A stretch of 64,000 nucleotides of DNA from Podarcis filfolensis. Its lineage: Eukaryota. The stretch is from NCBI GenBank assembly GCA_964270895.1, contig OZ185440.1. One strand, written 5' to 3'. This document shows, one piece after another, positions 10,972 through 30,891 of this stretch. The translations under genes were made by a program, and so were the position numbers. Within the stretch, counting starts at the first letter, position 1. Every line of letters starts with the position of its first letter. Under the pieces are notes generated by a model, which worked only from the letters and a program-made list of their open reading frames with translations, was not told the DNA's origin and did no database searches.

Positions 10972-12537
10972 TTTCCTTGGGCAGGCAGCAGATGAGCATT
11001 AGGCAGAGTAGTGAGCTGACAGTTGTCAGATGCTAGAAGACAAAGCTGTATGTGTCATGCAACCTGATAAGTTAACCTGCTGCCCTCAGCTGGGGCACTG
11101 AAGTAAAAGTTAACTGTCAGTTCAGTTATGTTCTGTAAGTATCTGGAACAGGGAACTACTTTTGTCCTTCAACACAGACCAAAAATGTCTTGGGTCACCC
11201 CTACCCCCAGGCCTGTTAGCCCAGCACTGAAGCCCCAATACATGAGGGGGTCCATGGGAAGAGAAGGCCAGGTGTCTGTGTAGGCCCCACAAAAGCCTGA
11301 AGACAGCTCTGAGGGAGGACAGCTCTTGCAGAATGAAATGTGAGACTCTTTGCTTGTAAATGTAGTAAGGTTTCAAATGTGTTAAAAGCACATTTGGGTT
11401 TTCACAGATAAATTATTTTCTCTTACTGTAGAATTCTGTGAAATATTAAAATAACATTCAAATCTCAGTTGGGGATTGCATTAAGTATGAAATTAGGTTC
11501 AACAATAAACTATTTTCAGTTGCAGGATTTGTAGAATAAGAAAAACAATTATTGTTGTTATTTGGCATCTGTATAGCACTTTCAAGTGTTCAAGACCTTT
11601 CATGTGCGTTATGTAGTGGTAGTTCTTACAACGACCCTGTAAGCCTTATAGGGTAGGGTAGAGTAGAGTAGGGTAGGGTAGGGTAGGTCTTGCAAAGATG
11701 CTTAAGACCCCTTGATGTCAATAGGACTTTAAAATGTATAAATGCCTGTAGGATTTAGACCCTTATCTGTGGGAGATTTTAGTCTTATTCAGAAATTCCT
11801 CAGACAGATTCAGGGATCCTTGATTCCTCTCTATGCTTTTGTTATTATTTACAATTCTATAACATTGTATTCTACCCCTCCATCAACTTGTGCTGATCAC
11901 CAGCTTTGCTTTTGTTTAAAAAGGAATATATAACAATAATCTTGTAAGTACATTCAAACCAGATAGTAGATCTAGCTGTTGTTCATTAGAAGATTTTTTT
12001 TAAAAGTCCTTATGTTGTTTCAGTTTTGTAAGATCTGTTCAAACACCCTGTTTCAATTACTTGCTTTGTGATACATAATTCAATAAGCCAATGCAGTTGT
12101 CTTAACCTGATCCTTTAATCCAGCATTCCAGCTATGAGCCTCTAACAGATGTATGACAATCAACAGGTGAAGCTTTTTAGGGACAAATCACATATGATGT
12201 CTGGAGACCCATTATTTAATCTTCTGCATTTTTAAGCATGGTAAATGCAACTGTGGGTGGAATGGGGGCAAGTTTGATTCAGAACAGGGCCATAATATAA
12301 AGAGATTTTCTAGCCTTTCCACCCAATTTTTCCTGTCTGAATTAACCCTCCACCCCTGGAAATTGCCCCCTGGAGCAAATGGCAGATGGCGATGGGGATT
12401 CACACTGCAGCCTTCATTCAAATCAGCCCTGCCTGCTTCCACAGCTCAGATATCAAGATACTGTATCTAGCTTGGTTCTCAGTTTGAAAACTGCATTGAG
12501 AAAGCACAAGCTGAATTCATAGGGCCTCGGTTTACAG

Positions 12538-12792
12538 CGTGGGTAGGCAAACTAAGGCCCGGGGGCCGGATCTGGCCCAATCGCCTTCTAAATCCAGCCC
12601 GCACACAGTCTGGGAATCAGTGTGTTTCTATATGAGTAGAATGTGTGCTTTTATTTAAAATGCATCTCTGGGTTATTTGTGGGTCATAGGAATTCGTTCA
12701 TTTATTTATTTTTTCCAAAATATAGTCCGGCCCCCCACAAGGTTTGAAGGACAGTGGACTGGCCCCCTGCTGAAAAAGTTTGCTGACTCCTG
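12538..12792 (+). mobile_element. hAT-type non-autonomous element, 255 bp (copy 1)
   Basis: 8-bp TSD GTTTACAG at 12530-12537 and 12793-12800; ends CGTGGGTAGGCAAACT / AGTTTGCTGACTCCTG; similar along its length to copy 2. Confidence 0.9.
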
Positions 12793-13194
12793 GTTTACAG
12801 AATGGCAGCAACCTCAGAATTCCTAAGTATTTCATAACGCTTCTGCTTTACCAATCCTCCTACTGGTCGCACGCCTCAATCCTAGGCAATATTTTACAGA
12901 TTAAAGAGATTTAATGAGAGGGAAGGGGTAAAAGTGCATAAAGGCAATCTACCTAATTCTATCTAACTCTATGTTCTCTCTCATCAGAAGTTAAACCACT
13001 TCCCCTGTCAGCTGGTCACCAATATTCCAACTTCTTCACACACAAGTGGTTCATGTGACCCAGTATTGAGAATAAAAGTCCTAGTGGTGGTGCAAAGGTC
13101 CTGCCTAATATGAATGTACACTAATACAAATATGGTGGCTCAAGGATACCCCAACCATCACTGGCGCCCTGGAATGCTGGGGCAGAAAACATCA

Positions 13195-13962
13195 GGGCTG
13201 CCTTCAGATGGCACTTTATTCTACCTTCTCGACATTTCTCGATCTGTTAATTTCTGCATTTAAGGCATTTTTTTAATGCAACACAAAAACAACTTCTGGA
13301 AATCTAGTGGAATCCAGCAAAATTTGGTCTCATTTCTGTGTTGCTTTAAAAAAACACAATCCATTTGCAGCCCCATTAACTAAGAAAATTGCAGGAGTTT
13401 TACATTGCAATTTCATGTGACAAAAATTTGGGCAGTATCCCAGCATACAGTTCTTCCATACCATTTAAAATTCAGAGCAACATGGTGCTATAGCTATCAA
13501 AAAGCCACTGTAAAAGGAAGGTTAGAAACTGGGACAGAAGCACCAGCATTATAACCAATAGGTAAAGGGACCCCTGACCATTAGGTCCAGTTGTGGCCAA
13601 TTCTAGGGTTGTGGCGCTCATTTTGCTTTATTGGCTGAGGGAGCCGGCGTACAGCTTCCAGGTCATGTGGTCAGCATGACTAAGCCGCTTCTGGCGAACC
13701 AGAGCAGCACACGGAAACACCGTTTACCTTCCCGCCGGAGTGGTATCTATTTATCTACTTACACTTTGATGTGCTTTTGAACTGCTAGGTTGGCAGGAGC
13801 AGGGACCGAGCAACGGGAGCTCACCCCGCCGCGGGGATTCGAACCGCCAACCTTCTGATCAGCAAGTCCTAGGCTCAGTGGTTTAACCCACAGTGCCACC
13901 TGCGTCCCTTCATATTATTATAACCAATAAAATGCACTAAACCTGAAGTCTGAATGCAGCCC
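13195..13962. mobile_element. Possible Harbinger-like MITE interrupted by the Sauria SINE
   Basis: GGGCTGCCTTCAGA at 13195 and TCTGAATGCAGCCC ending at 13962 (13/14 inverted match); no clear TSD. Confidence 0.4.
13561..13916 (-). mobile_element. Full-length Sauria SINE
   Basis: tRNA-related head on the minus strand (GGGACGCAGGTGGCACTGTGGGTTAAACC) and a CCCTTTACC-type tail; 13-bp TSD ATTATAACCAATA at 13548-13560 and 13917-13929. Indicates a squamate host. Confidence 0.93.
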
Positions 13963-16837
13963 AGATTGCTCCACTTCCAGGCATTATGTTTTTAACTGCA
14001 GTAACAGCACACAATATGTTCAGGCAAGAGCAGTGCAATTCTAATCCCTTATTTGTTACTATCTAAAATATTTTGGGAGTCATGTTGGTAGTTCAGTCCA
14101 TAATAGATAAAAGCAAATTATTTATAATTTCTTTAATAAAATAAAAAAATAAAAATCTTGTTTTTCTGCTAAAAAAAAGTCCCACAGCAGTTTATCATCA
14201 GAAAGGGGGTGGGGGAGGGAGAGAGAGGGAGATTTCCTGCCCCCAGGTTTACAATCTAAAAAGACGCAACACAAAAAGAAAATGGATTGGGAAGGAAGAG
14301 GAAATCAACTCAGGTTCAAATTTCAGGATAACAACCAGTTCACAATAGCAGTTTTATGTATAGATGAATTTATCAAATTGCCAACATCACACATAAACCC
14401 ACCAACAGTACCTGAAGTAACATTAGCTGAGGTTTGTGAGAGAAGCCAATGTTTGCAATGATGCTGCCCTGTCTTGGCCGTGTGGGGAAGAGACAGAGTT
14501 GGGTTGGCATAATATGCTGACACCCAGAGCTTCCTGGCCTGGCTCCTTGCAGACACAGCAGTCATCCACATGCTTTTGGAAAGCACACAAGCACCACCTG
14601 GGTGAAACAGCACTCTCCCTACTTGTGATTCCCAGAAACCAATGTTCAGAAGCATACTGCAGCTGACCTGGAAGGTCGAACACGATTGAGGAAGAGGGCA
14701 AATAAGCAGTAGCAAGAGTGGCAAGTGGGCTAAATCAGGAGGCAGTCAGCTGCTAATAGCACCTTGACTAAGGGTCCCCAAAGCTTGAAGTTGTCACTGG
14801 AAGACAGAAATGCCTGGTGCACGTCTGGGTGGCCCAACATGCCTATTAATCTCCCAACACGAGATTAGCTAGTGGTTCTAATCTCCCTTGCTCTCTTAAG
14901 CCCAGCTACTGCCAGCCCCTGCTGTCATGGATGTTAGCTGCAAATAGAATACTATTCACACACCTTTGAGAAGCAGATAACACAGATAACTTTTTAGATG
15001 GTTCTGCTTTGCTTGCCGCAGGAAGCCACCAAACTTTCTGGTCTGCCCGTCCCATAAACTGGCAGGAAATCATGACGGGCTCCCAATTTGCAATAAAATG
15101 TTAGCAAACACCCAGTTCGGCCAACCCAATGCTTTTTTAAATAACACTATTCATCCTGTGCCTGCCAAATTAGAGGCGAAATTAAGATATTTTACATGCA
15201 AGTCTCAAAATTAGATCAGACTTGTGAAATGAGCCAACTATTTTTCTGCAAGCTGGTGTCTATTGGTTGTATTAGTTAACTATTTGGAAGTAATAATAGT
15301 AATAAAGTAAACAAATGACTGCATGTGAAGGGAATTGACTAGGATCCTGATACATCGTGATGGCTGCTGGTGGCAACTGTACAAGGAAATAAGAAAAAGA
15401 ATTATTTTGTGTTTATAGTAACGACTACCAATATGGAAGCAATTAGAACACACTTGAACATTCTTTTTGTACAGAACAGATCGTGAAGGAAACAGTGTAA
15501 AATGATTGTTACTTAATCGGATCCATATGTGCTTAATTCAATTATACAATGACAACATATTGCTATTGATAATTAAAAGAATCAGAGAAGTACAAGGACA
15601 CCCAAAGAGCTGACAGCAGCATTCCACTCCATTCCAATGCTAGCAGAAAGCGGTTCACCAAATTTAACCATGGTGTAGGTTTCCCTGAACTCTGTCAAGT
15701 TACACCCAGAATGAACCTGGCACAATGAAGCAAGAGTGCAAACATTAGAGAATTTTTTTTTAATAATAATAAAGCTTTGGAATGAGCTAGTCTCCTGGGG
15801 AATAAAACCCTGCAGATTTCCAGAATTTGGAAGACCATAGAAGGCTGTGTATTTTGGCTGCGTAGTCTAACTAGCTATTCACAGCTGTAGGACCAGTCAC
15901 ACTATGGAAGACATTTTATATAAACATGACTAAACGGTATAAAGTATTGAAGCATTTTTAAAGATCATGTGGTCAGTTTTTTCAGTTATTCACATGGTGT
16001 AATAAATTTCTGACTAAGGGGAAGGGGGTGGAATTAGTCCCCGAACATAACTACTACTAGTCATTCAAATGCCCTCTTATATTATCATTCAACAAGCGGC
16101 ACCAGAATCACTTTTCTCCCTTCAGAGGGCAATTCTTCTCCAGTCACTCTGTGGTATAATTCGTATGGGGTAAAGGTTGTGTGAAGGATCCAATAGAAGG
16201 TCGACTCTCTGGCAATAATTTGAAATCCTGGCTATAAATTCAACCCTGATTTTTGAGGCTTGTGGTAGATTCTTTGTATTAACTAGACACATATGCATCT
16301 ATTGGGAAGAGGGTTGAAAAAAGTTGTTTAGCAACGAGAAAAATATGGTTGTGTCCCACATTTGGGATCAATTTCATAATCCTTTGTGCTTGTTTTGCTA
16401 TGAGAAGCAATCATATAAGCAGCATATAAGCATGAAGTGATGTCAGCTCTTTTATGTCAATATTTAAATGTGCTTTGTTACAGATCCCGATTTGATAGCT
16501 ACAGTCTCTACACCTCTGCCATAGGCTTACATTAGCATGGAGCATTTTTAGACAATATTGAGAGCGAGGAATATATCCCCTGCCTTCTATCTCCACAATT
16601 TACTGCGTGAAACTGTCCCCACCCACCCACCCTGGCTTGCTTCTGATACTGGAGCTTCATCCACTTTCGCCAAAAGGGGAACAGATTATAGCAGTATTTA
16701 GATTCCCTATTACAGTGAATGGGGGAAACACAGATTATTGTTTTATACAGAGCAACTAACAGAGGATGGATCCTGCAGAAAGGAATGGCTGGATGTGAGT
16801 GAAAGGAATGACAGTGGAAGGTGACTAGTTTGCACTC

Positions 16838-16840
<3 letters not shown>

Positions 16841-16874
<34 letters not shown>
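16841..16874. repeat. (GT)17 microsatellite
   Basis: Read directly from the sequence. Confidence 0.95.
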
Positions 16875-16878
<4 letters not shown>

Positions 16879-18085
16879 TTTTGCTGACTTTCCTTCATGC
16901 AGATGGAATCCCCTTAGTACAGAGAATGATCAGAGAACTGTGAGAAGAAGGTGGGTAGACTGAAAGTTTTTCTACTCGCTGGCTCAGTCTTGGGAGACAT
17001 ACAGTTAGACACTTGACAAATGTGGGATGGTGCTTGAATTTAGATTTGTTCATTTCTAAAAAGAAAGATATCATCTGCCCTGGAATCCCTTTTTAATTCT
17101 GAGCAGATGAAGGAAGGCTGCAGTTTTATGACCCAGGGAATAGAACAGATGAAATCCTGGGCTGTTTAGATCAGCACCCTGATTGTGGAAGGCAGCATGG
17201 ACAGGAGTTTATGTATCCTACAATGATTTCTATAACCAACACACTCACCCACCCTTCTGATGGTTGGTCTTCATTTTCCAGAAAGAGGTCTAGAGGCTTA
17301 CATCATGAGTTTGGTTTCTGTGCAATGAAGGTCACTGGAAACTGGTGGCTTTTCTGCATTATAAGGTTTATTTGCACACACACATGATAGAAATCTCATG
17401 ACGGTAACACTATGCACACCTTCCAGAAATGATCTGCAGCAAGTAAGTTTCTGTGGCAACACTTTGGCTGAAGGATACCTAAAAAGTTAGGGTCATTTAT
17501 ATAACAAAGAAACTGGTTTGACCATCTCAGCAATACTTTTTTCTGCAGAATCCAACTTCAAGATCCAATCACAGCAATAGAGGGAACCACAAATGCCCAT
17601 TTGGTCCAACCAAGAAAACTAGCAGATCCAAGCAAAAGATTCTGATACGAAATCTTCTAATATGAGTATAACACTTCACCATCCTTCATCCAATGTAATT
17701 TAAATGCTTGATATGTCATTCTTGCAACTTTCTGACTACTCTCCTGCCCAGTTTCTACTGCCACCACCTCTTCCAGCTAGGAATCAGAGTGCACTACAGA
17801 GTGTGTCTACAACAGCGTCCCACAGATGGGGAAGACATTGTGCCACTTCCTCCAAGACACATGCAAACTAGTTTCCTGTGATGTCTGAATAAGGAGGAGA
17901 GGAAGGGGAGGGACATGCAGGCACATTGCTCATGCACTGTTAGATAAACTCTTCACTGACAGATAAACCATTATTTGTTGAACCGACACTATCACATCTG
18001 AACCTTCCAACATAACTTCTAAGTCAGCCTATGTTTCTTTTAGTCAGGCTAAGCCAAAGAGTTAAGGTTGGCCTGTGCTGCAGCA

Positions 18086-18859
18086 CCTAGATGCCGAAAT
18101 CCAGCATCGCCTGAGCTCTGCGAGTGTGGCTTTCTCCCGATTGAAGTGCAGAGTGTTTGAGGACCAGGACATTCACAGGGAAACCAAAATGCTTGTTTAC
18201 AAAGCTATTATACTACCAACCTTACTGCATGCTTGTGAAACATGGACCACATATAAACGCCATCTCCAACTCCTCGAAAGATTCCATCAATGGTATCTCC
18301 GAAAAAATGTACACATCACTTGGGAAGACAGGCAAACTAATACCAGTGTACTGGAAGAAGCAAAGATCACCAGTGTTGAAGCAATGATTCTTCAACATCA
18401 ACTTCGTTGGACTGGTCATGTTGTGCGGATGCCTAATTATCGTCTTCCAAAGCAACTACTCTATTCCAAACTTAAAAATGGAAAGCGTGATGCTGGTGGT
18501 CAACAAAAGAGGTTTAATAAAGACTGTCTCAAGACAAATCTTTTAAAAATGTAGTATAAACACCAGCAATTGGGAAACACTGGTCTGCAAGTGCTCGAAT
18601 TGGAGAACAGCCTTTACCAAAGGTGTCATAGGCTTTGAAGACACTCAAACTCAGGACACAAGGGAGAAATGTGCTAAGAGAAAGGCACAGCTTGGCAAAT
18701 CCACACCGTGATAAACTCCTGTCCGGAAACCAATGTCCCCACTGTGGAAGGACATGTGGATCCAGAATTGGCCTTCACAGTCACTTACGGACTCATTGTT
18801 AAAACCGTGTTTATGGAAGACAATCTTATTCGGCTACGAGTGATCACCAAAGAAGAAGA
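18086..18859 (+). mobile_element. 5'-truncated RTE-clade LINE, 3' end
   Basis: Translation LDAEIQHRLSSAS...KMLVYKAIILPTLLHACETW...QLRWTGHVVRMP..RLPKQLLY is typical of RTE ORF C-termini. A frameshift occurs near 18540, a CPHCGRTCGSRIGLHSHLRTHC* zinc-finger-like end at 18731-18802, and a (GAA)n tail follows. Confidence 0.88.
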
Positions 18860-21800
18860 CCCTTGATCCCTTATTTATGAACAGAATTCAAATCCTCGAA
18901 CTAGGATCCTTCAGTTCACTGTTTCTCCTTCCTTGTCACTCTTGGTTAGAAGTCAGTCATGCAGCTTGTTTAAAATTCTCTCCAGGGCAGAACTGACTGC
19001 TTACAGTTAGCAGCAGAAACTTTGTTTGGCACCAAAAACAGAGTTACAGTCACACCTGATACCTAATACTACTGGCAGCAATAAAATTACAGCCTGATAT
19101 TTGACAGTTTAAAAACTAAAACATTCCACACAAACTGCATTGACCCTTTCATATGTACTCAAAGCCACATGTCCAAGCTGATGTTTCAGTTCCAAATTAG
19201 GTGGCTAAGCAAAATATGCAAACAAAACAACTGCAATAAATTATAGAGCTCTGAAAGTACCACTGCAATTGCACAAATCAAGGTCAGACATGCTAATGAT
19301 TAAAAGCTGGAGAAGCAGCAGCATCTTTGCCTTTTCCCAATTGACAATATACATGTCAAAGTGAATTCCCATGCCAATTGTAAAAACTGATTTATCTCAT
19401 TGTACTAAAAACACTTATTGTAAGACATCTGCAAAAATGTTTGGAGGCTACCACATTTAACCTTTATTTTCAAAGGGTAAGTTACTTAATTCTGTAGACT
19501 GCACATTGTGTAGATTGTATTTTTACAAGAAGAAAAGAAAGACAGAAAGGAAGGAAGGAAAAGGAAATGATGTATTTATTCATTCCAATTTATATCCAGC
19601 ATTGTAGCCTTTGTGACATCTAAGATGGCTTTAAAATTTGCTACCGTAAATGTTATGAAAAATTAAAAAAGTGTTTGTAGCCAGGAACTTTATTGAAACT
19701 ATGCAACTCTTCTCAATTTTATAAAGTGGTAGCTAATCTATCCCTTGTCATTCTCCAGAACAGCTTCTCTCACACAAGTGCTCATGGAACGCTATAGTTT
19801 ATAACATTATAGAATCACACAATATAAAAGAGTGTTCGGGAAATAACAGGAGACAAACAGACCAGCAGTACAAAGATCAGCAGCACTGGAGGAGATGGAA
19901 AAAAGACTTAGTCCTCCCCGTACAGGCAAATCTACAGGACCCAATTTAGGGTTTGCTTTTAAACTCGACTGATGAATAAAGTCAAGCCAGTTTGCAATTG
20001 TACATGATGAATGAGAAACTGAAAAGAATACTCCTCCTTAGAACATAAATGGTAGCACAGCAAGCTGCCTTTCATCACAGTATCAAATACTGGAAGAACT
20101 GTAAGTCTTACTTTTGTCACGAGAGGGAGCTCCAGTTCAAGTATTTCTTAAATGTGAATTTGAGAGTGGAGATGCAGTGTTTTGTCCAGCAAGAATAAGT
20201 TAACAGAGATACTATACCGATAAAAAACAGAAGTTGCAGACACTTTCTGACACCATGTTTGTGATAGGACAGGCAACAGTACCTATAAAACTAGGCAAAT
20301 ATTACATACTTTATTTTTAACCTACATTGTTCTTTGATTAAACTTTTATAAACAGGGGCGACAGTAGCACTGAGATGGGGGAAAAGATATTCAGAGTTGT
20401 ACAAAGAAAAGTAGATAGGGAAGATCTTGATTTGGAATCAAGCCTAAGGGTTGTACTGAACTAGCTTCTAACTCGGAGTAGGCCCATTGAAATTAACGAA
20501 CCTAAATGAGCCACATCCATTCACTTCAGTTAATCTACCCTAAGTAGGATTAACATTTAATATCACCCTAAAAGCTGGACCAGGAACTTCTGCAGTGCAA
20601 GTCCCAACTATACACATTTTTATACCCATGGCCATTTTTAAAAATTATCTCCATACTGTTGCAGACAGTGTTTGTTTGTTTGCTTGCTTTACTTTCAAGA
20701 CCCTTATTCAGGTCCCCTAAGATATTTCTTTTTCAGATATGGGATTTATACCCTGCTCTACAATAAAATAAGACTCAAGAACAGAACGTATTTCCCATTG
20801 GGAGGGGGCAGCAGGTGCCTGCCCTTGTGCTGCTGCTACTGCCAGGGCAGAAGAGGAGGAGGTGGTGGTGGTGGTAGAGGAGGTGCCTGCCCCTTACCCT
20901 TGAGAACTGGTTCTGGGGTGCTTAGGGCAGGTTTTACATAGGTCTTCTGGATGCTCGTGGCCTCTGTTGTGCTTTCAGCAGCATGTATTGTTACAGAGTC
21001 TTGGGAGCCAGGGTTTATGGGTGCCAGATTCCCCTAAATCCCAGGGTCTGATAGGTGTTAGCATTTAATCAATGTTTCGAGTGTTAAAATTGACTTCCAG
21101 ACACTGGATTTAGAAAAGCATTAAAATACAGTGCCAAGCCAGCTTCCCTTGTTCAGGAAATCGCCTGGGAGATCAGCCATTAACAAAAGACAAAGGGAAA
21201 GTAATGGGCCATTAGGAAAGCCAGAGAGAAGGGACTCTGTGCCAGGCAGAAAACGGGAAGGGTCCCTCCTCGCAGCTCTAAGTAAGTTTGGAGACAAAGC
21301 AGAGTAGGGTTCAGGAATGCAGTTGGCCGTGATGTGAGCTGAAGGTTGGAGTCTGTAAAAGGCAGCAAGCTAGAGGGTCAGAGCCATGGTAAGTATGCCT
21401 GGGACCCCTGAAATCTCACATCGCTCAGAGATTAGGGTGGCGTGCAACAGTACTTTGTGAGGTGCTTTCAATAAACTTGTATTTTTGCATTTCCACATAG
21501 ATGCTGTATGATCTGGAGAGGGGGCGGCACAGCCTGTGTCTGTTTGGGATGCTTTTGGGGCCATGGAGTGTACTAGTGATCTTCACATCTGCTTACCTGG
21601 TTGTGCTATTAGTGTGGTTGTGCAACTGGAGGAGTGTGTGGTGGGTGCAGTCAGGGTGTGTGGCATGTACTCATTAGAGGCTGCATGCAGAATGTGCTCT
21701 GTGTTTCTGCACTGCTTCCCATGGATTCTCTCTAAGCGGCCTCACAGTCTGCACAGTTAGGAGGGCTTGGATCCTATCCACCCTGTGTGTCAACAGGTGG

Positions 21801-22508
21801 CAGCAGTTTCCATGGTGACAGTGGCGTTCTGTATTTCAGCAGATTTTTCTATTCTGCTGGGTTGGTGCCAGTTCAGCCATCATTTCTGCCTTCCTGAAGC
21901 TTCTGAATGGACTCAGGATCGGGAATACTTTATGGCGGCTTAAATTCAGCCAGCATATATTAAGCCCGATTCCCATGTTTAGGATTGCCCTGCCCGCTAA
22001 GATTCAAACTGGTTCACAGCATATCATATTAACAACTGCACTACCCTGCTGGGCTTAATCCATTTCCATTTAAAATCAGTGGGCTTCAAAACATGCTTAA
22101 ATTGGCTGGAACAAACCTCTAATTATCTACATTTGTTGTTAATTGTCCAGGCAGGCAGCCCCAAGTGAACAGCCCTGACCTCTTTCACTCTCAAGGCTTG
22201 AGATTATCCAGACATTTCATCTGGTCCTACGGTTACTTGGAAATATATACGTATAATGAATTATACCTATTAAAATCATTTAAACTGCTTTTGTTTAGAG
22301 ATGACATTACAAAGCCAATTGGATTTTTGTGAACCAACTTAAAAACTGTATCCTTGTGCACCAGTATAGTGAATCTCATTCTATATTGCTTTTAAATATA
22401 TTTATTTCCCCTCTGTTTTCTGGCTAGCTACATGCAGTCCAATAAAGCTAATGGGACTCTGTTATTTCTTCAATATCCAGATAGTAAGAAAAAAAGCAAA
22501 TGCTATTA

Positions 22509-22761
22509 CATGGGTAGGCAAGCTAAGGCCCGGGGGCTGGATCTGGCCCAATTGCCTTCTAAATCTGGCCCGCAGACGGTCTAGGAATCAGCATGTTTTT
22601 ACATGAGTAAAATGTGTCCTTTTATTTAAAATGCATCCGTGGGTTATTTGTGGGGAATAGGAATTTGTTCATTCTCCCCCCCCAAAAAAATAGTCCACCC
22701 CCCCCACAAGGTCTGAGGGACAGTGGACCGGCCCCCTACTGAAAAAGTTTGCTGACCCCTG
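22509..22761 (+). mobile_element. hAT-type non-autonomous element, 253 bp (copy 2)
   Basis: 8-bp TSD TGCTATTA at 22501-22508 and 22762-22769; ends CATGGGTAGGCAA / GTTTGCTGACCCCTG. Confidence 0.9.
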
Positions 22762-23334
22762 TGCTATTAGATGTTGAGTCTACATGGATCACCTAAATCA
22801 CTGGTCCCTTCACTGAAATTTTATCACTTTTTAGCAGCCCTGTACATTAAAACATTCTTTGTATTATTATTTTAAGGGAAAGTAATGAGAGATTAAGGAA
22901 GTTTGTTCTGTCATTCCCCAGTTAACAGCTTGAAGTGTGGAGTCAGAGTACTGCAATATAAAAGTACATACTCAAAAGTGCTCTGGCATGACTTCTGGAA
23001 AAGTGGTTGGGAAGTTGTAACTAGGGTTTCAAGCTTTAAATAGGTTCATTAAATATTTAGGCTGCAGTCCTATGCATACTTACCTGGGAGTAATTTCCAA
23101 TGAATCAATGGGGCTTACTGAGCAGTCATGTATTGGATTGCACCGTTAGTTAATTAATTGCTGAGGATGGTGGAAATCCATCAGAGGGGCAAAGATTAAG
23201 GAAACATTTGTTGATTTTTCAAGGCTATTTTGATTCTGATGTGTTGCTGGAAGCTTTCACCTATTGAACTACAACTCACTTTTTCCTTCAGTAGTTCAAA
23301 AGTTACTGTAAAAGCTAGCTTGTGGGAGTGGGAT

Positions 23335-23533
23335 CAAGGGTGTACCAAAGGAGTGGTTAGGTTGGGGACCAAGGGCACAGGCCGGGGGGGCACAAAAATC
23401 ATGCCCCTCCACTCTGGCTCAGAGTGGCTAGGAGCCTATCTGCCCACTCTCCGTGCCAAGGGTGCAAAGGATGGGGTGTGTGTGTCAATACAGCTCCTTG
23501 CCAAGGGCGCAAGGGAGCCTAGGTACGCCTCTG
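23335..23533. mobile_element. Degenerate hAT-like MITE; a 3'-end copy lies at about 41975-42033
   Basis: Ends CAAGGGTGTAC / GTACGCCTCTG; the segment AATACAGCTCCTTGCCA.GGGCGCAAGGGA.CCTAG.TACGCCTCTGG is shared with the copy near 42000. Confidence 0.55.
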
Positions 23534-23741
23534 GTGGAGACAGATTAACAATCTGACCAGATGGGCCACCAAGGTTCCCCCCTCCCCGACCATGGCATGT
23601 CCATGTCTCTTTTGCCAGATGCAGAAATGTGTGTTTGCTTTCACATCTATTCTGACATAGCATCAAAAACAGGGGCATACAGCTCTGCAAAGATGGAGTT
23701 GGGTAACAGAGAATAGTGGTAAAAATGAGTCACTATGTAGA

Positions 23742-23868
23742 CCTGGAATGGGGAATCTATGGCCTTTCAGATGTTGTTGGACTACAACTCAAATCACCTC
23801 TGACAATTAGCCAATCCATGCTGACTGCGGCCAAGGTGAAATCTAACAATATCCAGAAATTCCCCATA
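23742..23868. mobile_element. Degenerate copy of the palindromic hAT MITE family that is inserted in dmrt2b
   Basis: GATGTTGTTGGACTACAACTC core plus GGGGAA/TTCCCC termini; a similarly decayed copy lies at about 9605-9725. Confidence 0.5.
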
Positions 23869-23908
23869 TCAGAGTTTAACTATTACTATTACTACTACTC
23901 CTACTCCT

Positions 23909-23983
23909 ACATTACAGTTTGAGATACAATGCCCTATCATTATTATAAAAAACAATAGGGCATTGTATCTCAAACTGTAATGT
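23909..23983. repeat. Perfect 29-bp inverted repeat with a 17-nt spacer
   Basis: ACATTACAGTTTGAGATACAATGCCCTAT (23909-23937) and its exact reverse complement (23955-23983). Confidence 0.95.
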
Positions 23984-25075
23984 GACAGTAAAAGTTCAAG
24001 GCACTGTAACAAATACTACTGCAAAATTAGTGCAGTTTCTCAGTCTTGTCTTCATGGGGGGAAATGTTTGGTTTTACCTTACCAATATGAACCTTTAAAC
24101 TTTCAAGATATTTGGACTGCCATCTATTTTTTGTTTTGTTTTGTTATAATATCTTGGGCTTCTGAGTAATTGAACAATTAGGGTGATTAATTGCATGCTT
24201 GCAATAAAAACAGACGACCAGCAGAGATCCCTTACAGGCTAAATATTTTGAGAAAATTCTATCTGCTACTAGACATAACAAATGCAATCAACCCAGCATG
24301 CAACTTGAAGCTGGTTGAATGGATGCTTGCTGGTTTGCTCTGGAACCCAAACCTCCTTAAAAGAAGCCAAAGTGTTTAAAAAAATAAACTCAAGATGGAG
24401 AGCATGGGGGAAGAGAAATATTGACATGTGAAGCTGATATTATCCTAACAAAAGAAACACTGTTGGCCCTTTGGCCATTTCATTGTTCAAATCAAAACAG
24501 CAAGACTTGGGAGAGTACACACTAGCTAAAGCGTTTGCCTCTGAGTAATTAACTGCTGCTGGGTAAGTTACAACGCACCAATAGGATATTTCTCAAATGC
24601 ACATTTTATATCAGGTGGTCAAGCAAGCTGTATTTATACAGCACAACACAAAATCTAGTGGCTTATGTAAAATTCAGAGAAAGTCAGGTTTTATTGTTTA
24701 CATTACAAGATCAAGTTTCTAACCCATGGGCTTGTGAAGCAAAGCATAAAGACACAGGCAGTGTGATAAAGTATGAGAAGCTAGAGTGGCTTTAATTATT
24801 TATTGGACTACTACCCTGCCCTTCAAAAATATGTGACTCACACAATAATATATTCAAATACAAAAGCTAAAACTTGCAATAGCAAAAACTGGATAAAAAC
24901 CAGCAGCAGAGATAATAAATTTTAAATTCTAGAGAGTTTTGGGGGAAGGGGTCTTCATTAGGCACCACAATAATGCAAATTACAGGGGAGGGGCATCTCT
25001 GAAAAGGGATGGGGCATCTCTGAAAAGACACCTACAGAAGAGCTGAAAACATGAAGCCTAGTTCATTTGTTTATA

Positions 25076-26290: not shown

Positions 26291-28643
26291 AGCAACACAC
26301 AGGTAATCTAACCTGAATGTTACCAGTCCAGAGCATAGATAAGTGAAGTCAAACTATTAATATTCCAAGTAGAGTTGCATGTGGTGCATCACCTTAAGCT
26401 TATAAAAAGGATGCCATTCCATGGAAGCAACTCACACTTCAAGTGACACAAGTTGTACCTAAGTGTCTACACTCTCTTGTTCCTTACTTGTATCAGAAAA
26501 ATTTCCAGTGTGTGCTGACCCAAGTTACTGGAAGACCCAAATCACTGAATGAGAGCAATTTTTAAAGAATAAAATCTTTATGGACTACTGTGGGATAGCC
26601 CTCCATCAAAATAATGCTTGGGTCAATTAAAAGCCCTTCCTTATTGAGGCTTTACTTAGCTTCAGGTTGTGAAGGAGCAAGAGGCAACAAAAATAAGCCT
26701 ATCATCTCAGTCATTCCCTACTGTTTCTTCACTAGCAGAGGGCAGCCCATAACAGGCATATCATGAAGCCTGCAGGAAGCAAAGGAAAGTGGAAAGAGCA
26801 GACTTTGGTCATTTCCTGTAAAAAGAGCCTGACTGCAATGTGCAGAGAATAACTTGTCTTGGTAGCTGAGAGCATTTGGACCTTTTCACAAATGAAGCAA
26901 CCCAATCTTTTAAAAACAAAACCTGTGTTTATATAAGCTAGCTGCATGAATTCTTGTTGGGCAAATTAACTCTGTGATATGACTCAATATGTAGAGAAAG
27001 AATTTTAACCATTTCAGTTGCTATGAGTGTTTCCATGATTTACAAAGCTCTCCTTCATGCAAGAGCTCAATGGAGACCAAGAGCTGGGAAAATCTATAAG
27101 CTATAAATGAACCAATATACTATCTTTAAATGAAATTGTTGCTAAAAGAAAAGAACATACACTTGCTTCATTAAGGCAAATTATTACTTGGGGCATATTA
27201 TTTGGGACTAAAAGCAAGACCTTGAGATGTTAAACTGGCCCCCCAAAGCTTGAAATACGTGTTTCTTTAGTATTTAAATCAATTGGCAATTAGTGCTTTA
27301 ATTTCTTTTGTGTATAGAATGAAATATTGGCTCCAGCAATATTTGTATTTTGTAGGAAAAGGTAATGCGTATCTTGAGAACTGTAATGCATATCTTGAGA
27401 ACTTTAACTTTCCTTGCCTATTGTTTTAGATAGTAGAATTGAAGTGTATTGCACTATTGCATTATTTGTAATAAGGGTGCCAAGAATCTATCATCAAAGT
27501 AGTATGGAATTCCTGTCGCCTAGGCAGCCCAGGACTTCCAGACACACTGTCTAGGCTTGTGCCCTTAGTAGTAGTGTCCAATATATTTCCAGCGAAAAGC
27601 AGTAAAGTTCAATTCCATACACATACTATTTTCTGTGGAGGTGGATGAGAGGATTTTCACAGCACAAATCCTATCTTTGCATGTCTGCTTGGCTGTATTC
27701 TCCATTTTGCTCATGAATCCAACTCCCTAGTAAGTGTGCTTGGGATTGCATTCTCAGAATTGAATAAGCTTGAAAGGAGGGCAGCTGCTCATAGAATGTG
27801 CACTTATTCTACCACCACTTCCGATAAGCAGATTCTGTAGGTTTTCAAAATAGTACAAAATCTGTAAAACCTTCTTGACCAGAAACAACAGTGGGCATGG
27901 CTACCCTTAAAAGGTACAGGACAGATCACACTGCACACACCGCAGTTCTTTAATTTCCCCTTCTGTTTCTGCTGACCCTCTTCTCCATGACAGTGGTGGT
28001 GGTGACCCGTCCTCGTCCCAGATTATTTTTTTGTCAGTTTGGGTGCATGTTTTTCTTTTTAATAGCAGTGGTAGCCTCTCTGCTTGGAGCATATCATAAT
28101 CCGAATGATATGGCTAATCAAATGGCAATGCTGGTTACCAATTACCCTGCTTCAGCAAAGGATATTCAACTAGATTTTCAGATCCTGTTTGAAAGAAGCT
28201 GCAGTTGCGCCATTTTATGACATTATGCTATGTTGTAATATTTTTTCACCTGGTTTTTCCTCTGCAAGTAGTTACACTGTATTTTATAATATACTGGAAG
28301 CCATATGCCTGGTAATATTTTGCAGCTTCATACAGGCAAATAATGTTTTACTTATAAGCAAAACAAGTTGGATGAAAAAAGCCCAGTTGAACACATTTAC
28401 AAACATAAACATTGATGAAAATAAAAATGCAAATCCTCACTCTTACCAGAACACACTGATCTAGTTCCAATGTATCACAACAAAGTAGAACGTTTTCCCC
28501 CTACATCAGAAATGGAATAGGAGTCAATGATGTTAATTACTTGCAGAAGAGTTACAGTTTTACATACAATATGAATATTTAGTAGGGAGACTTCCTTATT
28601 AATATTTCATAAGAATACTGGCCATCCAAGCTACTTAATAGAT

Positions 28644-29530
28644 TTAAACTTTTAATAAAGATTCTACTGAAAAAGACAGTATCTGCTTGTTTATTTCTGA
28701 GCAACACTCTTGAGATAAATGCCTTACATCAGTGTTCCCCAACCTTGGGCCTCCAGCTGTTTTTGGACTACAATTCCCATCATCCTTGACCACTGGTCTT
28801 GCTAGCGAGGGATGATGGGAGTTGTAGTCCAAAAACAGCTGGAGGCCCAAGGTTGGGGAACACCGCCTTACATCCTCCTTGACTTCAAGACCTGTATCAT
28901 TAACATTGTGATTTTCTTGTTTTGCGTGATGATTACACAAAATACAGTATCTGGCTGCCATGTCTATTAATTCTTTATTTTCTTGGCGTTTTATTATTTT
29001 GGGGCTCCAATTATTCTCAAGTAAGAGAAGATCTCTGGAAAAGACACTGGACAGAGCTTGCTCCTTCCAGTCACAATTATTTTCTCTGTACACATTTAGG
29101 TATTTATTCACGTTCTCCTCACAGGTACGTTTCTGTGAAGTGCCACCTTCAGTTTGGCTTGCTGTGATAAAAGCTACATTCAAAGGAGAAGTGTCTGTGA
29201 TTTTATAAATGCAAGGTCCACAGTCTAGAACCTTGGTATTTGAATGCAGCAAAGGAAAACAAATATTCAACATACCAGAGTTAACGCATGTCAAGTAATT
29301 AAGGTAATCATGTCCACTTTGGAATACGTTTTCCTCAAGGGCTGGTAAGTGCTCTCTGCTCAGCAGCTGTCTTCTCTGATGGGCAGCAAATCCGTCAAAG
29401 GTTCTTTGTCGAAGTTCCCTTTCCAGCATTATTGATTCTAACTCCTTGTCTGCAAATGCCCTTCTTTTCCTCATTCTCTCACTGAGACTAGAAAGGCAAT
29501 GTTCTGTTTCCTGGGAGGGTGGACTATTTG
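28644..29530 (-). CDS. DMRT2B: dmrt2b-like coding exon 3 (887 nt, phase 1 to stop), includes an in-frame MITE
   Basis: Acceptor cttttcctttggattttgttgtag| ends at 29531. Encodes the DMRT2-specific box LSERMRKRRAFADKELESIMLERE and the C-terminal LSFSVESLLK motif; TAA ends at 28644. Confidence 0.9.
28730..28865. mobile_element. Palindromic hAT MITE (136 bp) inserted in the dmrt2b coding sequence
   Basis: 56-bp inverted arms (54/56 match) starting CAGTGTTCCCCAACCTTGGG; 8-bp TSD CCTTACAT at 28722-28729 and 28866-28873. Confidence 0.95.
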
Positions 29531-30233
29531 CTACAACAAAATCCAAAGGAAAAGGACAGTTATTGTGCAAAGCCTGGCATTAGGTGCTTTCAAACATTAT
29601 GCATTTCCTTTACAGAAAGCATCACGCGGTAAAAGCGGTATTACTAAGAAACCTGTGTGTAAGTTGTCACATCACAGGTAATAGTTGCACGTGCCAGTCA
29701 TTAACTGTTTGTACACGTTGTATAGTTGAAAGTGTAGCATAGTGAAAGTGCACCCATACGCTTGTCACATACAACAGCTAACAGCTAACTACACCAGTGT
29801 ATTTCATGTGTAGGTAATATCATATGTAATTAAGACATCTGAAGCAGCCTTTGTGCTTAAATACAGCTGACACCAATAAAATCAAGAACACTCAGTTCAT
29901 ACTCAAATCAGTTGCACTTAGGTATACTTAGCTTCTCTGGAATGCATCCAGTATTCACTCATGCAATGTAATGTCAACCAGAGTCTTGACTAGAAATGCC
30001 ATTGTTACACAATCTTTTGATGTTTTTTAAGGGTTTGGAGAGTCATGCCTAAAGAGGTCTTCATAAGTAGATGCTTATTTATGGAATGTGTCAGGAATAT
30101 AAAATAAACATTCATTTCACAGCTATAACAACTTATTGTCCTATATCAATACCACATTTTACAATGGAATGCATTAAAAGGGAAGAACCTACTAGGTTTG
30201 TTTCAAGTGTATTTCCTACATGCAGGCACATAC

Positions 30234-30342
30234 CTTCCGGTGAGTGTCTAGCCAACAACCTGGCAGTCTGCTTGGTCTTGCAATGGAAGTTTAATCTGTG
30301 GCCAGAAACTGAACATTCACTGCTCCTCATGGCTTTCTTAAC
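30234..30342 (-). CDS. DMRT2B: dmrt2b-like coding exon 2 (109 nt, phase 0-1): VKKAMRSSECSVSGHRLNFHCKTKQTARLLARHSPE
   Basis: Strong acceptor tcctcttctttttgttgttgcatag| and donor GAAG|gtatgt. Length, phase and ends (xKK...LLA...EG) correspond to the DMRT2 middle exon, and it links exons 1 and 3 in frame. Confidence 0.85.
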
Positions 30343-30891
30343 CTATGCAACAACAAAAAGAAGAGGACATTCATCAACACCATAGCTATTTTTGCTTACT
30401 AACAATGTCCATGCTTGCCTGCTAAAATAATACTGAAAACATTCAAGCTATTTGGAAGCAAATAAGAAAAGCTGCATTATGATCAAAAGACAACTTTCCC
30501 CCAGGATGCATTACAATTATATAGTTTACATTAGGGGTTTATTATTGCTGTTTTAAATACATATAACATGAACTCAAAGAAAGGGAACTTGTCTTCAATA
30601 GCAGTAAACCAATGACAGTGCCAGGCCCAGACAGCTCCACTAGCACCCAAATTAATTTAAGAAGCTTAAACTATTTACACTGAATCCATCCCATTTAAAA
30701 GTTAATGTTACTCAGCTTCGGTCTACATGAGGCAAAGCTTACTAAAGACTGGAACTTGTTTTAGCTGAAACGCAGAACCAGATTCCAGTGACTTTCTCAG
30801 GAAATGGTGCTTCAGGAGAGGGCAGTTTTAAGGTTACTTTCCTTACATTATTCCTCAGCTTCACATCCTCCCTGTTTGTTTTTGTGTCACT

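Follow-up and report, generated by a model that had tools for sequence, protein, structure and literature searches.

An in-frame hAT-like MITE insertion, restricted to one wall-lizard lineage, in the last coding exon of a dmrt2b-type gene

The window, by which we mean the whole 64-kb stretch of DNA analysed here, carries on its minus strand a dmrt2b-type gene with three coding exons and two GT/AG introns, whose coding sequence of 1311 nt specifies 436 aa. The gene model rests on alignment of the 388-aa Podarcis raffonei protein (P0001) to the window sequence, from which the exon boundaries were read, and the features are collected in Table 1. The DM domain lies in the first exon. The product of the third exon opens with an invariant RMRKRRAFADKELE...MLERE helix, continues as a long variable stretch and closes with a C-terminal L-x-FSVESLLK motif; a Pfam search of this last exon returned no match above threshold. 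Gene-wide identity to P. raffonei is 97.6%, so that the window comes from a Podarcis-like lacertid other than P. raffonei. Within the last coding exon lies a 136-bp fold-back element (28730-28865), which is the subject of this report. A second DM-domain exon, DMRTB1-like, was noticed at ∼43700-43860 on the same strand, upstream of the dmrt2b-type gene; LRP8, DMRTB1 and GLIS1 lie next to one another in human. In fish, dmrt2b lies on the lrp8/kank4 side (PMC7689362).

Table 1. Positions of the gene, isoform and element features in the window.
Feature	Position	Strand	Details
Coding exon 1	32212-31898	minus	donor CAG/GTGAGT; DM domain, Pfam PF00751, E = 2.5e-22, full profile 1-47
Coding exon 2	30342-30234	minus	109 nt
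Coding exon 3 (last, including stop)	29530-28644	minus	RMRKRRAFADKELE..., insert, LSFSVESLLKV
Alternative intron of the 234-aa isoform	28501-29275	minus	donor G/GTATGT, acceptor ...TGTAG/GGGG; 775 nt; whole element inside
Alternative terminal coding segment	28475-28500	minus	(G)GKRSTLL and stop at 28477-28475
Target-site duplication, copy 1	28722-28729		CCTTACAT; from repeat search; orthologues have a single copy
Target-site duplication, copy 2	28866-28873		CCTTACAT; abuts the terminus; perfect 8-bp match to copy 1
hAT-like MITE, non-autonomous	28730-28865		left end CAGTG; right end CGGTG on the other strand
Inverted-repeat left arm	28732-28785		carries ACTACAATTCCCA at 28767-28779
Inverted-repeat right arm	28810-28863		carries ACTACAACTCCCA, minus strand, at 28816-28828
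Codon TCG (Ser) in the element loop	28806-28808	minus	majority plus-strand T at 28807 gives TAG

Distant named matches of the host gene are mostly teleost dmrt2b and none is named dmrt2a, and the assignment as dmrt2b-type appears well supported on sequence grounds, if not proven. The C-terminal motif is kept in sharks, lungfish, turtles, crocodiles and lizards in the protein alignment. Ray-finned fish dmrt2b (PMC7689362) resembles the gene in its DM domain, its RMRKRRAFADKELE helix and its C-terminal (L/P)FSVE(S/A)LL(K/R); the host gene differs in being an amniote gene with only ∼25% identity to the teleost proteins over the last exon. The same source holds that dmrt2b occurs in fish alone and that only one dmrt2 exists in reptiles (PMC7689362). 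Proteins of the dmrt2b type with the same C-terminal motif (P0002-P0023) were encountered in squamates, turtles, crocodilians, coelacanth, lungfish and sharks. The amniote, shark, coelacanth and lungfish matches appear to disagree with the fish-only statement, and the gene that received the element would belong to a dmrt2 paralogue that the literature (PMC7689362) confines to fish.

The element consists of two arms of 54 nt each, 98% complementary and separated by a 24-nt spacer. An earlier note, made from the sequence alone, had counted 54 identities in 56 positions and had foreseen a very stable hairpin in the mRNA; extended to the termini the arms match at 55 of 58 positions, which revises the count, and the hairpin prediction stands, since the RNA of the element in gene sense folds into one almost perfect hairpin of −113.2 kcal/mol, compared with −41.4±3.8 kcal/mol for shuffled sequences (z = −19). 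A pattern made from the terminal 30-mer, for which zero chance matches are expected in the 64-kb window, is present only at the two ends of the element. Both arms also hold ACTACAA(T/C)TCCCA, at 28767-28779 on the plus strand and 28816-28828 on the minus strand, and the insertion therefore places two such motifs within one exon.

For lizards, hAT elements without autonomy have been recognized by an 8-bp target-site duplication, a YARNG terminus and the lack of coding capacity (PMC3014272). Here the octamer CCTTACAT occurs twice, abutting the two termini, and is single at seven empty sites. The element is short, multi-copy and non-coding, with terminal inverted repeats and five of its six frames closed, as is characteristic of a MITE. 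Its left end, CAGTG, conforms to YARNG, while the right end, CGGTG, has G in place of A at position 2. With one terminus deviating, we file the element as hAT-like and do not claim proven membership of the hAT superfamily. The same departure of CGGTG from YARNG would make later excision of this copy doubtful. The 32 non-autonomous hAT families of Anolis carolinensis (PMC3014272) are alike in their 8-bp duplication and YARNG-type CAGTG terminus, in lacking coding capacity, in having moved recently and in copies that far outnumber any autonomous partner. Unlike them, the present element is a 136-bp near-perfect palindrome, with one deviant terminus, in a lacertid host. A literature search on the terminal inverted-repeat string and on lacertid hAT or MITE families found nothing specific to either.

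The family to which the element belongs is very large. Contigs matching it at a threshold of at least 90% number 12,000-24,000 per DNA run (∼24,000 in one) and 506 in the RNA run, and its summed depth is 4-6 million versus ∼100 in the flanks (read contigs placed on 28200-30400); counts of matching contigs and summed depth are not copy numbers and give the order of magnitude only. On this measure the family falls within the 10^4 copy class for each of the three species with run data. Across the sequence compared, 64 kb of the carrier genome and ∼47 kb of relatives, no further copies were found, either elsewhere in the window or in the five orthologous loci; apart from this copy the 64 kb contain only a 37-nt fragment (23760-23796) that is 81% identical to part of the right arm.

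The element and one copy of the duplication together make 144 bp, that is 48 codons free of stops, and lengthen the predicted product from 388 to 436 aa. The minus-strand open reading frame 28644-29570 runs through the element as EVKE-DVR-RCSPT...LGNT-DVR-HLSQ...LSFSVESLLKV followed by the stop. When the 144 nt are removed, a protein of 388 aa results, as long as its counterparts in P. raffonei and P. muralis, both of which align with a single 48-residue gap at this very point; against exon 3 the P. raffonei protein shows 244 identities, three substitutions and the gap at EDV/RHLSQ. An in-frame insertion of 48 codons into a dmrt2b-type coding exon, as the earlier note proposed, is thereby borne out. 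As 144 bp is divisible into codons, any such insertion preserves the downstream frame. Stops are a different matter: five of the six combinations of orientation and phase hold one to three of them, and for this copy the observed combination is the only open one.

Openness in that combination hangs on one base. At 28807 this copy has G, and ∼93% of the family depth has T (4.11 of 4.41 million in run X1, with similar shares in the other runs), shares that are depth-weighted and may not reflect a recently active subfamily. Translation of the T variant gives an in-frame TAG, and the frame is therefore open because this copy carries G. Either a copy with the minority variant inserted here and was of a sort that selection let persist, or a later substitution from TAG to TCG reopened the frame, and either course hints that the 26 residues of the C-terminus matter. 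The stop-free state could also be luck, since the minority G variant still makes up ∼7% of a very large family. The 45-aa peptide encoded by the element had no match among proteins of 170-540 aa, a weak negative given these length limits.

At the protein level, the insert lies 26 residues before the C-terminus and divides a segment that is conserved in reptiles as VKEDVRHL, AKENLRHL or AKETVRYL. The octamer and the terminal G of the element restore GAT GTA AGG, and hence DVR, on either side of the insert, so that the duplicated DVR described in the earlier note is indeed present. An AlphaFold2 model of the exon-3 product has a mean pLDDT of 44, with an N-terminal helix at 74-87, values below 50 over residues 58-277, ∼30 in the insert and ∼60 in the C-terminal motif, which forms a short helix. 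The model agrees, if weakly, with an insert that is tolerated within a flexible linker, where the word disordered would be a soft reading of a low-confidence prediction.

The history of the site was followed in assembled relatives, namely P. raffonei (L001), Lacerta agilis (L002), P. muralis (L003), P. lilfordi (L004) and the amphisbaenian Rhineura (L005). At each of these loci, alignment with the window is interrupted precisely at 28730 and 28865, and the octamer is single. The nearest relative, organism B, diverges from the window by only ∼1.3% over the stretch compared, and one of its DNA contigs skips exactly 144 bp with the joint 28720->28865. RNA of organism D yielded a 903-nt spliced contig that runs from the end of exon 1 through exons 2 and 3 and past the stop to 28619, again with the empty site; its joint 29530->30234 has CT..AC ends, equivalent to GT..AG on the gene strand, and the contig implies that the long mRNA is expressed in a relative. 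The site is thus precisely empty in seven taxa (five assemblies, one DNA run and one mRNA). The notion that the 388-aa orthologues merely hide the element in an annotated intron was rejected, because the orthologue DNA itself is without it.

Filled sites were found only under the carrier-species label, in two samples from separate studies. In sample S1 (run X1), contigs 28654-28759 and 28837-29033 cross both junctions. In sample S8 (run X14), a contig has its first 23 nt in the element and reaches 29316; it falls below the 31-letter bridging rule, and its first 31-mer is junction-specific. Independent contigs of two samples thus cross or enter the junctions and supply the read support for the insertion. 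An assembly artefact was rejected on these contigs, and a somatic or collapsed-repeat error in place of a germline insertion strikes us as highly improbable: the element is highly repeated and short-read contigs do break within it, but both junctions are reached by independent contigs of two samples in unique flank sequence, 0.94 of the sampled 31-mers from 28600-29000 are present in X1, and a perfect 8-bp duplication is what genuine transposition leaves behind. Judged from these sequence comparisons, the insertion is real, young and lineage-restricted, and arose after the split from organism B, in keeping with the young, lineage-specific MITE first described.

Neither S1 nor S8, the two carrier-species samples, contained an empty-site joint or allele. 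The suggestion that the insertion may be lineage-specific or still polymorphic holds in its first half, while for the second half polymorphism was not detected in the two samples and the junction depth in S1 is about half. The junction contigs of X1 have depths of 41-44 as against 76-109 in the flanks, and S1 contigs carry non-window alleles at 29221, 29247, 29349 and 29487. From the half depth and these alleles the reference animal could be heterozygous for the insertion, although the contigs yielded no empty allele. In S8 the filled site occurs together with ancestral alleles, which suggests that the insertion is older than the private changes of the window haplotype. Separately, run X1 has no contig on 29034-29213, and the element-side contig diverges after 29033 for 26 letters, whereas the interval is covered normally in the other three runs; dense heterozygosity, a structural variant or a read-placement filter are possible causes of this gap.

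The gene also has a shorter annotated product. A 234-aa isoform ending in ...VNSGGKRSTLL is annotated in P. raffonei, P. muralis and P. lilfordi. Its donor lies inside exon 3 (exon end at 29276) and its acceptor (28502/01) beyond the long-form stop, and donor, acceptor and stop are all intact in the window. Since this alternative intron spans the insertion, the element would be spliced out of short-isoform transcripts. In P. muralis and P. lilfordi the more recent annotations contain the 234-aa product alone, for which reason the long form may be minor in some tissues.

These annotations, together with the intact donor and acceptor, are what speaks for a short isoform so dominant (donor 29276, acceptor 28501) that the MITE would be effectively intronic and would count as coding sequence only in a rare read-through transcript. 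We hold this to be quite unlikely. The organism D RNA contig is unspliced at that donor with introns 1 and 2 removed, and in this contig, the sole RNA contig examined and one of the long form, no 29275->28501 joint was seen; the long frame has persisted for well over 100 My and is found in Rhineura too; and the exact donor and acceptor strings searched for are absent in Rhineura, as is the acceptor string in L. agilis. The long form is ancestral and is expressed in a relative.

Constraint on the host gene was gauged from the same relatives. The long frame is intact in all five, Rhineura included, with 388-391 codons and canonical splice sites. Pairwise dN/dS is 0.3-0.5 for the whole coding sequence and ∼0.6 in comparisons with Rhineura for the C-terminal half, the part specific to the long isoform. 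These values point to purifying but weak selection on the gene. Private codon changes number four nonsynonymous and two synonymous in the window lineage, compared with 6:4, 7:3 and 23:9 in sister lineages. Relaxed selection, one of the explanations offered in the earlier note, finds no specific support in these small counts, and extra relaxation in the carrier lineage was set aside as its private changes resemble those of the other lineages.

We propose, as the probable explanation, that a recent cut-and-paste MITE insertion has persisted because it is tolerated, with the long reading frame preserved. What the comparisons show is that a non-autonomous fold-back transposon, hAT-like and of a very abundant family, moved by cut and paste into the final coding exon of this gene. 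It did so in a single Podarcis-like wall-lizard lineage that had already parted from its nearest sampled relatives. The sole stop-free orientation and phase, together with the minority G at 28807, let the long frame survive with LSFSVESLLK still encoded. Tolerance would be favoured by a position in a region that structure prediction leaves unordered and by the rebuilding of DVR on both sides. Truncating insertions at this site would presumably be purged by selection, which would explain why so improbable a stop-free configuration is the one seen. The long mRNA, if made, would contain an almost perfect hairpin of 56 bp, which may reduce translation or draw in editing or dsRNA processing, while the annotated short isoform would be unaffected, as the element would leave with the intron.

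The same hairpin could have harsher consequences. In a hypomorphic or null allele of the long isoform, it would block translation or trigger dsRNA processing or decay, or AG sites of the element would divert splicing, so that only the 234-aa isoform would effectively be kept and the intactness of the frame would be recent luck. We consider this a clearly less probable account, with several observations in its favour. Hairpin stability is extreme (−113 kcal/mol, z = −19); two AG sites of the element lie on the mRNA strand, 28840/39 and 28803/02, with 72-83% pyrimidine upstream; a short isoform that dispenses with the region is annotated in three Podarcis species; and the gene evolves fairly fast (omega ∼0.45). 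Under a history of neutrality or loss, however, an open frame has a chance of about one in six, lower still given the TAG of the family majority. The window lineage has no nonsynonymous excess, the C-terminal motif is conserved across jawed vertebrates, and the long mRNA is expressed in a relative.

Insertion into a coding exon with the frame kept has its closest analogues in the in-frame palindromic elements of bacterial genes (PMC10969869) and in the recently active non-autonomous hAT elements of Anolis (PMC3014272). The Rickettsia palindromic elements and prokaryotic MITEs are likewise palindromes of ∼100-150 bp that lie in open reading frames, keep the frame and add a peptide; they are recurrent, in dozens of genes, and their families seem compatible with reading frames by build (PMC10969869). 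The lizard case, in contrast, is a single vertebrate event in which the majority form of the family would introduce a stop. In exonization of vertebrate transposable elements, such as that of Alu-derived exons (PMC6924539), transposon sequence also joins annotated coding sequence, but it does so by new intronic splice sites and mostly in minor transcripts, whereas in the lizard the element inserted straight into a constitutive coding exon that already existed.

To our knowledge, direct insertion into a constitutive coding exon with the frame kept has rarely been documented in vertebrates. Another prokaryotic MITE, the Coxiella QMITE, reportedly also lies in frame within open reading frames. 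In most amniotes DNA transposons are generally regarded as inactive, and the species-restricted insertion of a family of the 10^4 class indicates that cut-and-paste transposition has recently been active in wall lizards. The exact empty sites of the sister species provide a natural comparison with and without the insert, which could measure the effect of 48 added residues and of a 56-bp hairpin within the coding sequence on a transcription factor. An open frame that hangs on one minority base would be a small and testable signature of selection on a new insertion. The dependence on G at 28807, the single stop-free combination and the short-isoform intron that removes the site are the points that go beyond the earlier note.

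The element might do more than be tolerated. The hairpin, or the acceptor-like CTCGCTAG/CA at 28803/02, could reroute donor 29276, or the hairpin could serve as a substrate for A-to-I editing or small-RNA production; the element would then act as a species-specific switch of isoform or expression, and the change from TAG to TCG at 28807 would record selection for an open frame, acting either at the time of insertion or later. We give this only a small chance. By codon reading, a join of donor 29276 to 28803/02 would, speculatively, be in frame; if it is made, the half with the DM domain would be joined straight to the conserved motif of the C-terminus.

Two of the nonsynonymous changes private to the window haplotype, Tyr->Cys at 29221 and Leu->Arg at 28987, alter residues that are conserved as far as Rhineura. 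Carrier sample S8 and the other species have the ancestral base at both positions; carrier sample S1 (run X1) has the ancestral base at 29221 and the window base at 28987.
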